Sequence record: NC_062582.1
Length of the DNA: 64,000 nucleotides
Reading direction: 5' to 3' (one strand)
Shown here: one piece after another, positions 56,945 through 64,000 of the stretch
How positions within the stretch are numbered: the stretch's first letter is position 1
Layout of the letters: each line of letters opens with the position of its first letter
Program-made: the position numbers and the translations under genes
The notes under the pieces: generated by a model
The model's input: the letters and a program-made list of their open reading frames with translations, nothing else
The model's database searches: none
Told to the model about the DNA's origin: nothing

Positions 56945-56978
56945 ACAGCATATAGCCTTCCCGTAGGAAGGCGTATAT
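56945..56978. terminator. Hairpin between convergent genes
   Basis: gccttcc-cgta-ggaaggc. Confidence 0.7.
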
Positions 56979-60302: not shown

Positions 60303-61409
60303 ATGTTACCATTAGCTCCCCCGTCATTCATTGGTGATCCGTCAGCACCTGTAAAACAAATTGACCCATATGGGAAAATCAATCCCGAAGTACAAACTAA
60401 TATCGCGTCAAAGTTAACTGCCTTTGATTTAAGCTTTGACTCTATCCTGGCTAAGTCCGTGGATATGACAAAGCGTATTGGTGCTACACTGGCAGATGGA
60501 TCTTTATCCCTACCAGAAGCTAAGCGTCGCCTACAAGATGCAATGGGTGGTTCTCGTCAAGGTATCTCTGCATTAGCTGAAGGGCTTGAGAACCTGATGC
60601 TTGGAGACATGACAGGTAAAGATCCAGGTACTGGTTATGTGCGTACAGCCAACGACATGATCGACGGTGTTCAGTTGGTAATCAACGGAAAGAAGTCTAC
60701 CTTTACAAAAGGAGATTTCCCAAACGTTGGAGCTATTGTAGGTTTCATTGGAGACCTATCTAATAACCCTTTGATTAATGCATTCGACCTTGGTGCAGAA
60801 GCAGCGTTGGTTAAAGGTATCCTCACCCAGGTTACACAATGGGGTGTTCCAGAAATCATCGATGAAACATTCGGTGCAAAATGGGACGATACTAATAAAC
60901 GTTATAACTACGACTATGACGCAGACTTTAGGTTCTCAGTTGTAAAGCGTACTTCTGAAGATCTTTCTCCTGGTACAGACCTAGCAACGATTCGACAGTT
61001 GATGTTACATGGTGGCGATACAGCACTTATTGCAGCTAACCCTAGTTTCCCAGAACAGCTATTAGAACAATACAATTTCCCGTTGGGTATCGTTCCATCG
61101 AAAGATGATAAGCGTCCTGATTTACATACCTACGGAGAAGAACTGAAACTGCTGGAAGAGATCCTGGATATCTTGAAACCAGATTGGTATCAGATCAAAC
61201 GAATGGTATTTGATCCAGCAGGTAACCCGGCGTATAAACCGGAGTTGGTATGGAACTTACGTTTCATTTCTAAAGCTTCGATTGACGCCGTTAAATTGAT
61301 CAGTTATGATACCAAATATATCCCTGCACTATTAACAGCACCGTTCTACAGTGTGGATAGTGGTAAACAACTGTTAACACGTATGTATCCGTACATCGTG
61401 CTACAATAG
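60303..61409 (+). CDS. Putative virion structural protein
   Basis: MLPLAPP start after the terminator; phiKZ-family-like KQIDPY/DLGAE motifs. Confidence 0.55.
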   Translation: MLPLAPPSFIGDPSAPVKQIDPYGKINPEVQTNIASKLTAFDLSFDSILAKSVDMTKRIGATLADGSLSLPEAKRRLQDAMGGSRQGISALAEGLENLMLGDMTGKDPGTGYVRTANDMIDGVQLVINGKKSTFTKGDFPNVGAIVGFIGDLSNNPLINAFDLGAEAALVKGILTQVTQWGVPEIIDETFGAKWDDTNKRYNYDYDADFRFSVVKRTSEDLSPGTDLATIRQLMLHGGDTALIAANPSFPEQLLEQYNFPLGIVPSKDDKRPDLHTYGEELKLLEEILDILKPDWYQIKRMVFDPAGNPAYKPELVWNLRFISKASIDAVKLISYDTKYIPALLTAPFYSVDSGKQLLTRMYPYIVLQ

Positions 61410-61419
61410 AAGCGTTTTT

Positions 61420-61444
61420 ACCACTATATAACTAATTGGATATT
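61420..61444 (+). promoter_or_regulatory. Early-type promoter variant (TATATAAC)
   Basis: 23/25 identical to 12485-12509; precedes a run of small co-oriented genes. Confidence 0.6.
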
Positions 61445-61460
61445 AACCTAACAGTTCTAA

Positions 61461-61491
61461 ACATAAAGCCTTCCTACGGGAAGGCTTTATG
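61461..61491. terminator. Perfect hairpin of the conserved family
   Basis: cataaagccttcc-tacg-ggaaggctttatg. Confidence 0.75.
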
Positions 61492-61510: not shown

Positions 61511-61660
61511 ATGGTTCAGGAAATTGAAGCAATCATAAAAGAAGCAGAACAACTCTGCCGCTGCGCTGAAAGACTTACCAACCAATCAAAATTTGCAGTA
61601 CGTTTAAAGAACCAACACCCATCACTCAAATCGCTTTATGAAAAGCAAACAACCAAATAG
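61511..61660 (+). CDS. 49-aa peptide (below track cutoff)
   Basis: TAAGGA RBS; MVQEIEAIIKEAEQLCRCAERL... Confidence 0.55.
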   Translation: MVQEIEAIIKEAEQLCRCAERLTNQSKFAVRLKNQHPSLKSLYEKQTTK

Positions 61661-61669
61661 GATATTAAA

Positions 61670-61981
61670 ATGAAAAGTTCTCCCGAGTTCCAACACTTCT
61701 GGAAATTCATCAATGCAGTTGATCTCCTGGATGCACTCAAAAACGAAGTCATGGTTTGGGTTACCGATGAAGGTAAGTTCGAAGTTGATTTCCATGTCAT
61801 CGGTAAAGGTGCTCGTGCACGCATGCGTCTCAACGAAAATGACAAGTGCGCTATAACCCTGTTCGACGCCTTGCAACAAGACGATGGTCAAATCATCATC
61901 GACTGTGAAGATGACGAAGCTTACATCAAACAAGCTAAGCGTGTCATTGCTTATCTGAACAACCCACATGACGTTTGCTAA
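61670..61981 (+). CDS. Small early protein, FIxxxxxLD family
   Basis: TAGGA RBS; 103 aa. Confidence 0.65.
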   Translation: MKSSPEFQHFWKFINAVDLLDALKNEVMVWVTDEGKFEVDFHVIGKGARARMRLNENDKCAITLFDALQQDDGQIIIDCEDDEAYIKQAKRVIAYLNNPHDVC

Positions 61982-62004
61982 TTAATTGTAATCAGGAGAT
62001 TCAA

Positions 62005-62292
62005 ATGAAAGTACCTAGCGCCGTAGTACTGATGAACAAGTTCATCGAGGCTGTAGTTAAACTGGACGATTCCGGTAAACTAAAGCTGACGGTCGGTTCG
62101 TCATTGTCTACGTATCTTTACGAGATTAATGGTCCGGACAAGGATGACGGTCACTACGTCTATTGCGATAATATTTATTGCACCGTAGAGTACCGCCACT
62201 TCACGAAAGACATTCGCGATGTGTTCACCCTGACCGAAGAGAATCTGAGCGACTGCGCTCAGGAACTCTACATCACTCTGATCGGCGCGTAA
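62005..62292 (+). CDS. Small early protein, FIxxxxxLD family
   Basis: AGGAG RBS; 95 aa. Confidence 0.7.
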   Translation: MKVPSAVVLMNKFIEAVVKLDDSGKLKLTVGSSLSTYLYEINGPDKDDGHYVYCDNIYCTVEYRHFTKDIRDVFTLTEENLSDCAQELYITLIGA

Positions 62293-62332
62293 TCCGCGCC
62301 AACATCCCACAAACACCAATAGGAAAGTTTAA

Positions 62333-62806
62333 ATGTTTATGAAATCTGTGATCCTCGCTGTACTGGCTCTGACTTCCGTTTCTGCATTCGCTGTTAAAGA
62401 CGTACAGAAACCAGAATACGAAATCCTACCCAATGCTCCTTACGTACCTGTGCACATCACAAAAGACGTATGTAAAGAAGTCGGTAAGTTGGGTGCATGG
62501 ATCAGTACCGGCATCACTAACGGTCTGTCTAATGGCATGATCAATAATAACGTTATCAATGAAGCTGTTGATAATCTGGGTAATCAGAATCTTGTGATCG
62601 CGGCAGTGTTGGTTGCACCGGAGAGTGTAATCGACGGTATGCGTGAGTACGATCAACAGCAGGATTACAAAGACGCATCACGTCTGTTCCCTAACTACAA
62701 CCGTCATAACCTGCACGGTTCGGTAATCCAATTCCGCTGCTCCAAGCGTATTGGTGAAACCATCGAGATCCCAAAGATCACCCGTGTTAAGAAGGTTTCG
62801 ATGTAA
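62333..62806 (+). CDS. Exported protein with a Sec signal peptide
   Basis: MKSVILAVLALTSVSAFA; two Cys in the mature part. Confidence 0.7.
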   Translation: MFMKSVILAVLALTSVSAFAVKDVQKPEYEILPNAPYVPVHITKDVCKEVGKLGAWISTGITNGLSNGMINNNVINEAVDNLGNQNLVIAAVLVAPESVIDGMREYDQQQDYKDASRLFPNYNRHNLHGSVIQFRCSKRIGETIEIPKITRVKKVSM

Positions 62807-62991
62807 TGGCAGACATCGAAATGCCATGGGGCGTTGCTATGCGACTATTCAAAAGGCAGATCGTGCAACGTCTACAGAAAGAACACAAGCTCTCTCCCAA
62901 GGAAGCAGTCGCTCTTTGGGAGGAGAGTATTAAACAAGAAGACTCCCGTATTCGGGCCATTTTAGAGGACCTAACAAATGCAGATTCCTGA
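62806..62991 (+). CDS. Free-standing RNAP beta' dock-domain-like peptide
   Basis: MPWGVAMRLFKRQIVQRL..KEA..ILEDL resembles RpoC [26 protein letters not shown]; TAATG coupling. Confidence 0.6.
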   Translation: MADIEMPWGVAMRLFKRQIVQRLQKEHKLSPKEAVALWEESIKQEDSRIRAILEDLTNADS

Positions 62992-63265
62992 TACGCTGGT
63001 ACAGTTTAATGAGTTCATTAAGGAACTCGCCCGTCTGGATGAAATGAACATTTTAGAGTTGATTCCACATGCCCACATTAAAGGCGTGTATGTGGTGGCA
63101 GTTAAAGATACTACCCGTGGTGTACAATTGTGGTTGGACCGTGATGACATGGTACTCGACTACATGACTGTCATGGGCAGTAAACAGGTCAAGGTATCCT
63201 TTGATATCAAAGGTCTTGCAAGCCGTGCATTCCTCTTCCTTCAGAACTATCGACACGAGATCTAA
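62978..63265 (+). CDS. Small early protein, FIxxxxxLD family
   Basis: GAGGA RBS; 95 aa. Confidence 0.65.
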   Translation: MQIPDTLVQFNEFIKELARLDEMNILELIPHAHIKGVYVVAVKDTTRGVQLWLDRDDMVLDYMTVMGSKQVKVSFDIKGLASRAFLFLQNYRHEI

Positions 63266-63267
63266 TC

Positions 63268-63729
63268 ATGAAACTTAAACACCGTGAAAAGTTGGTAACC
63301 GGTTTGCTTGATTCGTATGCCATGTCTGTGCGCCAGTGTTACCCAGGCGAGACTAACCGTCAACTGGTTCGACGTCTGGTTAATGTTCTATATAAAGCCA
63401 ACAAAGGTATGTTCCTTGCTCGTGATGACTCGCGTCATTTCATTGCCAGGTTAAAACATGGTGAAGGTTCATTGACAGTACTGACTGTCTTTGATAACAA
63501 CTGTGTCGACCTGAGCCTACCAGTTGAATTCACTGACGAGATGCAGGAAGACATGTTCATGATGCTCTTCGGCGTGCTGACCCTTGCTGTAAGTGTTACA
63601 GTGAGTCAAGGTATCTCGGATATGAACTCCCGTGCTGCTACTGCTATACAGCGTAATAGCGGGAACTTCTGGAACACCCAACAGCAAGGTACCTTTAGCA
63701 GTCCTGCTCAACAATCCTCACCGCTTTAA
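63268..63729 (+). CDS. Hypothetical protein with a Q/S/N-rich tail
   Basis: 153 aa, coupled to the upstream gene. Confidence 0.6.
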   Translation: MKLKHREKLVTGLLDSYAMSVRQCYPGETNRQLVRRLVNVLYKANKGMFLARDDSRHFIARLKHGEGSLTVLTVFDNNCVDLSLPVEFTDEMQEDMFMMLFGVLTLAVSVTVSQGISDMNSRAATAIQRNSGNFWNTQQQGTFSSPAQQSSPL

Positions 63730-63738
63730 GGACTAACC

Positions 63739-64000
63739 ATGAAAGTAGAAATTACACCACAGCATGGCAAGAACCCTGGTATCAATATCAATGGTCCGCA
63801 GATAACGGACATTGTCTGGCAGATCTTCAACTACTCTATTGGTTCTAACCGTTATGAATGTCCTTGGTATAAAGCTCGTCAAGAAGCGGGGGCGTTCTTC
63901 CAGGGAGGTTCGGGAGAGAATACCGGTTGGATTTTCATTGAGCTTGGGCAGCCTGCCCATGGTTTCAAATACCTGAACATGATTAATCGTGCTCTGGCAT
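63739..64000 (+). CDS. Partial hypothetical protein (MKVEITPQHGKNPG...)
   Basis: TAAGGA RBS; frame stays open to the window end. Confidence 0.6.
   Translation, partial: MKVEITPQHGKNPGININGPQITDIVWQIFNYSIGSNRYECPWYKARQEAGAFFQGGSGENTGWIFIELGQPAHGFKYLNMINRALA

Follow-up and report, generated by a model that had tools for sequence, protein, structure and literature searches.

The window analysed here is a 64,000-nt stretch corresponding to bases 124001–188000 of Pseudomonas phage Phabio (MF042360), a jumbo phage of the phiKZ-like type which infects P. fluorescens SBW25, has a genome of 309 kb and encodes 2 multisubunit RNA polymerases. Within it, at 62806..62991 on the + strand, lies PHABIO_254, an ATG-to-TGA open reading frame of 61 aa which is annotated in the record (MF042360) as a hypothetical protein and which we find to be a free-standing homologue of the dock hairpin of the non-virion RNA polymerase (nvRNAP) beta' N-terminal subunit. 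An earlier note on this DNA, made from the sequence alone, had claimed a 61-aa gene at this position; its coordinates and the peptide it quoted are exact. The ATG overlaps the TAA of the upstream gene PHABIO_253 (62333..62806, + strand; 157 aa) in the string TAATG, and a Shine-Dalgarno-like AGAAGG read from the sequence (62790..62795, + strand) is positioned 10 nt 5' of the ATG, within the end of gene 253. On the other side, PHABIO_255 (62978..63265, + strand; 95 aa) starts 14 nt ahead of the PHABIO_254 stop. PHABIO_254 is therefore translationally coupled to both neighbours, which bears out the coupling proposed in the note. The open reading frame is not embedded in a beta' chain: it encodes 61 aa and is flanked by unrelated genes.

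These genes belong to a variable accessory island of small genes, PHABIO_250–257 (61511..64000 on the + strand, continuing past the window end), which occupies the interval from the phiKZ gp174 homologue to the head protease. Island genes number 0 in phiKZ, 2 in PhiPA3, 6 in 201phi2-1, 7 in Viktualia and 8 in Phabio, where PHABIO_254 is ~5–10 kb from the virion RNAP genes. PHABIO_253 has a typical Sec-type signal peptide, with cleavage after AFA, and is on that account predicted to be exported; with 19 variant sites across four metagenome runs, it is also the most variable gene among near-identical environmental Phabio-like phages. PHABIO_252 (62005–62292) and PHABIO_255 are 95-aa paralogues placed either side of the 253–254 pair, and 251, 252 and 255 resemble an array of related small, presumed early proteins. 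When window positions 62420–63260 are compared with the relative L005, gene 254 is 97% identical and the flanking genes 253 and 255 are 73% and 69% identical, respectively. The reverse mosaic is seen in the L007/L021 pair, in which the dock gene is the diverged one. Judged from these sequences, the dock gene appears to move as a module of its own, independently of its flanks. No conserved partner of the dock gene was found in the compared islands, and the downstream neighbour differs by lineage. A link to Imp7 (gp166, the nvRNAP import factor of phiKZ), which is encoded in the same larger block, was considered and dropped: no Imp7 homologue is detectable in the whole Phabio genome, in agreement with a preprint according to which Imp7 is confined to close phiKZ relatives, and nothing else supports the link.

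Genes 250–257 are headed by a promoter-like motif (61407..61460, + strand) which sits directly after the gp174-like gene. The motif reads AATAGAA, about 12 nt, CTATATAAC, then TA..GATATTAA, and can also be written AATAGAA, ~12 nt, CTATAT[T/A]AC. Genome-wide, the short pattern TATAT[AT]AC has 28 matches on the + strand and 2 on the − strand; the extended motif, with its upstream [AT]AGAA-type box, accounts for ~20 of the + matches and has none on the − strand. One copy is found 38 nt upstream of PHABIO_104, the homologue of gp68, and the same motif occupies the same place at the island head in 8 relatives (six related contigs, 201phi2-1 and Viktualia). A literature search with the promoter octamer gave nothing useful. 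The early promoters of phiKZ-like phages are phage-specific, AT-rich and read by the virion polymerase (PMC7598289), and the island motif presumably belongs to this class. Because the motif fits that description, PHABIO_254 is predicted to be an early gene, co-expressed with the nvRNAP subunits. The early operon of the earlier note thus stands in part, in that an early-type promoter motif is present at the island head, with expression itself at the level of a prediction; a search for RNA runs that contain this sequence found none. Downstream of the motif in Phabio there is a GC-rich hairpin (61457–61483; AAAGCCTTCC-TACG-GGAAGGCTTT, then TATG). In the relatives an equivalent terminator-like hairpin is located upstream of the promoter, and a similar hairpin occurs at window positions 56950–56975.

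A search against PHROGs aligns residues 2–57 of PHABIO_254 with positions 311–365 of 478 in phrog_2987 ('RNA polymerase beta subunit'; E 5.3e-8). Across the Phabio genome, phrog_2987 matches PHABIO_84 (E 4e-190) and the 61-aa open reading frame, and there is a weak match to the beta' N subunit of the virion RNAP. PHABIO_84, the gp55-type N-terminal subunit of the nvRNAP beta', carries the string ELHIPWG ~100 residues ahead of NADFDGD. Its dock segment (residues about 331–385) falls just before NADFDGD and inside the region spanned by Pfam PF00623 (Rpb1 domain 2; residues 309–448). A Pfam search with PHABIO_254 itself returned zero families at E up to 1, PF00623 included; this model spans 166 positions, of which the dock makes up one third, and its gathering score is not reached by PHABIO_254 alone. 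An HMM built from the stand-alone family described below aligned over its full length with the dock of every one of the ~100 beta' N homologues compared, with scores of up to 48 bits, and retrieved only PHABIO_254 itself and PHABIO_84 from the six-frame translated Phabio genome. In tblastn searches of 50,697 phage genomes with PHABIO_254 or a relative, every non-self match fell on the same segment of jumbo-phage beta' genes, in the order RVTF4 (36% identity), the PhiPA3 group, Psa21, D6, Noxifer, the phiKZ group, Serratia phages and AR9, and no stand-alone copy outside Phabio was found among these records. The best sequence match in the PDB is to phiKZ gp55 329–381, followed by AR9 beta' 286–339. 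The 'IPWG' start, which the earlier note gave as typical of phiKZ-family beta' subunits, indeed opens the dock of phiKZ gp55 (ELHIPWG, 329–335) and that of ~100 relatives.

Structural comparison leads to the same segment. AlphaFold2, run on the single sequence, returns a hairpin with a pLDDT of 92.6, composed of helices at residues 8–27 and 31–59 joined by the turn S30-P31-K32, and PHABIO_254 is therefore predicted to fold alone as a two-helix hairpin. The 10 structural neighbours listed from the ESM Atlas are all RNAP beta' families or jumbo-phage proteins of beta'-N size, with TM values by query of 0.71–0.88 over 57–61 residues. Foldseek against the PDB gave nothing at E ≤ 0.001. In its ranking the helical arms of HU/IHF (a generic match) come out on top, phiKZ gp55 appears 5th and 8th, and AR9 beta' is 37th. 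Similarity to the dock is thus found by both the profile and the structural route, and the resemblance to a detached dock that the earlier note had pointed out is confirmed as homology.

The E. coli RpoC string quoted in that note is also correct, and the family aligns to beta' residues 368–419, with the numbering fixed by the catalytic NADFDGD at 458–464. With the search space set to one sequence, the E. coli dock scores 7.9 bits with the free family, as against 21.8 bits with the phage enzyme docks. Since the free family is thus the more distant of the two from E. coli, PHABIO_254 derives from the phage's own nvRNAP beta' (gp55 type) and not from a host gene. The beta' dock thus stands as the source of the copy, with the phage nvRNAP beta' taking the place of the host enzyme to which it had originally been compared. 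Taking the sequence and structural comparisons together, PHABIO_254 is almost certainly a domesticated, free-standing copy of the phage nvRNAP beta' dock hairpin.

The protein is not confined to Phabio. In a search of 1.84 billion representative proteins we recovered 6 relatives of PHABIO_254, all of them small (61–87 aa); with cluster members counted in, there are 9 distinct stand-alone sequences, which fall into six 90% clusters. All family members are encoded on jumbo-phage contigs and in the same island, bounded by the phiKZ gp174 homologue on one side and by the genes for the head protease and virion RNAP on the other. The gp174 identities of the carriers are 99, 80 and 75% in the Phabio-like phages, and 46–48% in three lineages which are as distant as 201phi2-1. 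A pattern scan of IMG/VR with the PHABIO_254 alignment gave no confirmed locus. Residues P7, G9, A11, L23, S30, K32, A34 and L53 are invariant in the free family. Between P0004 and P0165 there are 12 synonymous and 6 non-synonymous changes (pN/pS 0.14); the Phabio/L005 pair shows 4 non-synonymous changes against 1 synonymous, numbers too small to interpret. Four metagenome runs with >99% identical phages contain 0 variants inside gene 254, where about 2 would be expected, too few for the difference to be informative. The nine stand-alone sequences in one syntenic island and the pN/pS of 0.14 argue that the family represents a real gene rather than a relic. A tree of the ~60-aa segments, which has too few columns to name a donor, groups 7 free proteins together at a weak 62% support (six of them at 87%) and places them outside the cluster of Pseudomonas-phage enzyme docks (96% SH-aLRT), so that the copy would be either old or fast-evolving.

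A column-by-column comparison reveals how the free proteins differ from the enzyme docks. The core positions of the hairpin are conserved across both groups, but columns occupied by Y, V, L, Y, L, I and H in the enzyme docks hold E, R, S, E, R, T and Q in the free family, and the tip turn S-P-K-E-A is conserved more strictly in the free family than in the enzymes. Because the core is kept while hydrophobic columns have turned polar and the turn is strictly conserved, the free family appears to have lost the face that packs against the polymerase body and to have been resurfaced with polar residues for a solitary life, retaining the exposed tip. Conservation of the tip could be structural only, in the manner of a helix N-cap.

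The nvRNAP beta' N subunit of Phabio has its own dock and NADFDGD intact. Scored with the family HMM, this resident dock gives 23 bits and those of 201phi2-1 and Viktualia 24.7 and 20.6 bits, respectively, compared with 35–48 bits for many other jumbo phages. In phiKZ, PhiPA3, 201phi2-1 and Viktualia there is no free gene, and the sole family match in each is the beta' N gene. Given that close relatives are without the gene and that the resident dock is intact, we conclude that PHABIO_254 is an accessory protein, presumably a regulator, and not a polymerase subunit; its absence from these four phages implies that its role is dispensable. A special divergence of the resident dock in carriers of the free gene was not upheld, as 201phi2-1 and Viktualia score equally low and have no such gene. 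We also dropped the idea that the virion RNAP beta' is without a dock and receives one in trans. In a profile alignment, the virion RNAP beta' N subunit of Phabio has a candidate dock start directly after GTRNVISS (249–256), with ~200 aa remaining before ADFDGD. The resident docks of the Phabio clade (PHABIO_84, genome 48620–50083) have a derived helix 2 containing three cysteines (..RKC..YC..EC..), a feature not seen in the PhiPA3 or phiKZ groups. Many of the beta' N open reading frames (415–430 aa; P0023, P0027, P0029–P0033 and others) end before NADFDGD, ~40–60 residues past the dock, a layout expected of genes split by introns, phiKZ gp55/gp56.1 among them, and this split site is near the segment that was copied out as the free dock.

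What is known of the dock in working polymerases suggests what a soluble copy might do. Sigma region 4 of the bacterial holoenzyme touches both the flap tip and the beta' dock; the phage 21 Q protein and AlpA sit on the beta' dock at the mouth of the RNA exit channel, where T393 and K395 of E. coli beta' are contacts of phage 21 Q. In the phiKZ nvRNAP, the sigma-like gp68 takes the place of sigma, held on the beta subunit by an enlarged C-terminal domain that also touches gp55. We tentatively propose that PHABIO_254 is a soluble decoy of, or competitor for, the dock, a reading to which we give somewhat less than an even chance. The protein would be an early product, transcribed from promoters of the class that also serves the polymerase subunits, and would fold alone, with the core and the exposed tip S30-P31-K32 (the counterpart of T393–K395 of E. 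coli beta') kept and the side that faced the polymerase body made polar. It could then present the dock tip to a ligand (a protein, or possibly an RNA) whose usual landing site is the polymerase dock next to the RNA exit channel. Candidate targets would be the C-terminal domain of the gp68-type subunit, which is sigma4-like and serves as its anchor, or some other exit-channel factor, and competition by the dock copy might tune nvRNAP assembly or activity. Titration of factors near the RNA exit channel, or of a defence sensor, had been conjectured in the earlier note, and both stay conjectural here.

Of these candidates, gp68 is the only known protein neighbour of the gp55 dock region. Its interface with gp55 in phiKZ measures 446 Å2, against 1862 Å2 with the beta subunit, so any affinity of gp68 for a lone dock should be low, provided that the dock is the contact at all. 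A complex prediction for PHABIO_254 with the C-terminal domain of the gp68 homologue (residues 270–525) scored 0.00 without controls, a value that speaks neither for nor against binding. By acting as a decoy, the free dock would displace or pre-occupy the anchoring domain of the sigma-like subunit, or another ligand of the exit channel, and two outcomes can be envisaged. As a switch, it could move nvRNAP between promoter classes; as a weapon, it could poison the polymerases of co-infecting jumbo phages and spare the diverged resident dock. Purified phiKZ nvRNAP fails to use middle promoters, and another form of the enzyme has been proposed for them (PMC7598289); this middle-promoter form may be relevant to the dock copy and would be one candidate for the switch. 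That a polymerase-derived decoy constitutes a new kind of transcription control or weapon, whether as a promoter-class switch or as a dominant-negative agent against co-infecting jumbo phages, seems to us rather unlikely on present evidence.

Other explanations can be set against the decoy. The hairpin might be derived from polymerase and now perform an unrelated role, for example as an adaptor or inhibitor for another phage or host protein or as a dimeric helical bundle, in which case dock ancestry would be uninformative about function. The body-facing surface has been rewritten, the gene belongs to a shuffled accessory island with no conserved partner gene, and its distribution is patchy. 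Separation from the Pseudomonas-phage enzyme-dock cluster (96%, with the free branch at 62%) indicates long independent evolution, and a two-helix hairpin is a generic interaction module, for which Foldseek also returns the HU/IHF arms. All of this would suit such exaptation, but a phage-specific P-W-G start and a tip that are both conserved more strictly than in the enzyme docks, together with the promoter class common to PHABIO_254 and the polymerase genes, argue against it, and we regard a wholly unrelated role as a serious but minority possibility, about one we would expect to be wrong four times in five. A related proposal directs the free dock at the host, where it would bind sigma70 region 4 or another user of the beta' dock and so disable host RNA polymerase. 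Contact between sigma region 4 and the beta' dock in the bacterial holoenzyme makes this conceivable, as do the predicted early expression, the independence of phiKZ-type infection from host RNAP (according to published abstracts and PMC7598289) and the alignment of the hairpin to E. coli beta' 368–419 with equivalents of T393/K395. The family stems from the phage enzyme, however, with the E. coli dock at 7.9 bits against 21.8 for the phage docks and no PF00623 match even at E 1, and host shut-off is in our estimation unlikely.

Conflict between phages, or with the host, offers a different target: the protein could poison the polymerase of a co-infecting jumbo phage in a dominant-negative manner, or soak up a host defence sensor that recognises the phage dock. 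The family HMM scores many other jumbo-phage docks at 35–48 bits but the derived, Cys-rich dock of Phabio itself at 23 bits, which would be in keeping with this, and a fast-shuffling island with mosaic exchange independent of the flanks is typical of conflict genes. The docks of 201phi2-1 and Viktualia nevertheless score low too, yet these phages have no free gene, so there is no clear co-variation with the resident dock and a conflict role is improbable. More remote still is a role as an extra piece that one of the phage's two split polymerases would receive in trans. In jumbo phages, beta and beta' are already encoded in parts by several genes, and PHABIO_254 is ~5–10 kb from those of the virion RNAP, but the resident nvRNAP beta' N dock is intact, the virion RNAP beta' N has a candidate dock of its own, and the gene is missing in four cultured relatives that have both polymerases; we consider this very unlikely indeed. 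We give equally little credence to a non-functional remnant of a partial beta' duplication that is open by chance. Small size and the 4 non-synonymous against 1 synonymous changes in the closest pair could be read in that way; against this, six diverged clusters keep the gene intact, with boundaries that match the domain exactly, another pair has a pN/pS of 0.14, the resurfacing is directional, the translational coupling is tight and the fold is confidently predicted. A soluble dock decoy or competitor remains our working proposal, tentative as it is.

The dock domain itself is known, but the conserved, free-standing and resurfaced mini-protein family of jumbo phages is not annotated in the records examined. 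In all multisubunit polymerases the dock is where initiation and antitermination factors land, and natural free-standing copies of a single RNA polymerase surface domain have, to our knowledge, not been described. A conserved 7-kDa copy of the dock provides a ready bait, and whatever binds to it becomes a candidate dock ligand. If the decoy proposal is true, it would introduce a new principle, domain self-mimicry, into phage transcription control or inter-phage conflict; if the protein is unrelated to transcription, it would be a clear case of a domain cut out of an essential enzyme and given a new surface as a soluble mini-protein.

The closest known counterpart is the dock of nvRNAP beta' N (phiKZ gp55 329–381; PDB 7OGP chain A), which is homologous over the full 61 aa of PHABIO_254. 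The two have in common the P-W-G start, the helix-turn-helix hairpin, the S/T-x-x-E-A turn and the I..E-L end. The enzyme dock is embedded between the GRxVIT motif and NADFDGD, whereas PHABIO_254 is free-standing. Helix 2 of the nvRNAP dock has conserved aromatic and hydrophobic positions, which in the PHABIO_254 family have charged replacements, with S30 and K32 invariant. Identity between PHABIO_254 and Phabio's own dock is 21% over the 34 aa aligned by BLAST. The bacterial beta' dock (E. coli RpoC 368–419) has the same position and fold class, with E. coli beta' T393 and K395 aligning to S30 and K32, but differs in its very weak sequence similarity (7.9 bits) and in that PHABIO_254 has no Pfam match.

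Small proteins which capture sigma region 4 through its core-docking surface are known in T4 AsiA and E. coli Rsd, and isolated beta' coiled-coil fragments bind sigma in vitro. With AsiA and Rsd there may be a common principle, by analogy, in which a small soluble protein competes with a polymerase surface for the promoter-specificity subunit. These proteins are not homologous to the polymerase surface that they replace, however, whereas PHABIO_254 is a literal copy of a polymerase domain whose binding is conjectural. Split RNAP genes, such as the beta/beta' halves of jumbo phages and the split beta' of cyanobacteria and archaea, likewise present part of a polymerase as a separate small gene. 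Here, in contrast, the full-length subunit keeps its own copy of the dock and relatives are without the extra gene, and PHABIO_254 is for these reasons a duplicate rather than the product of a split.
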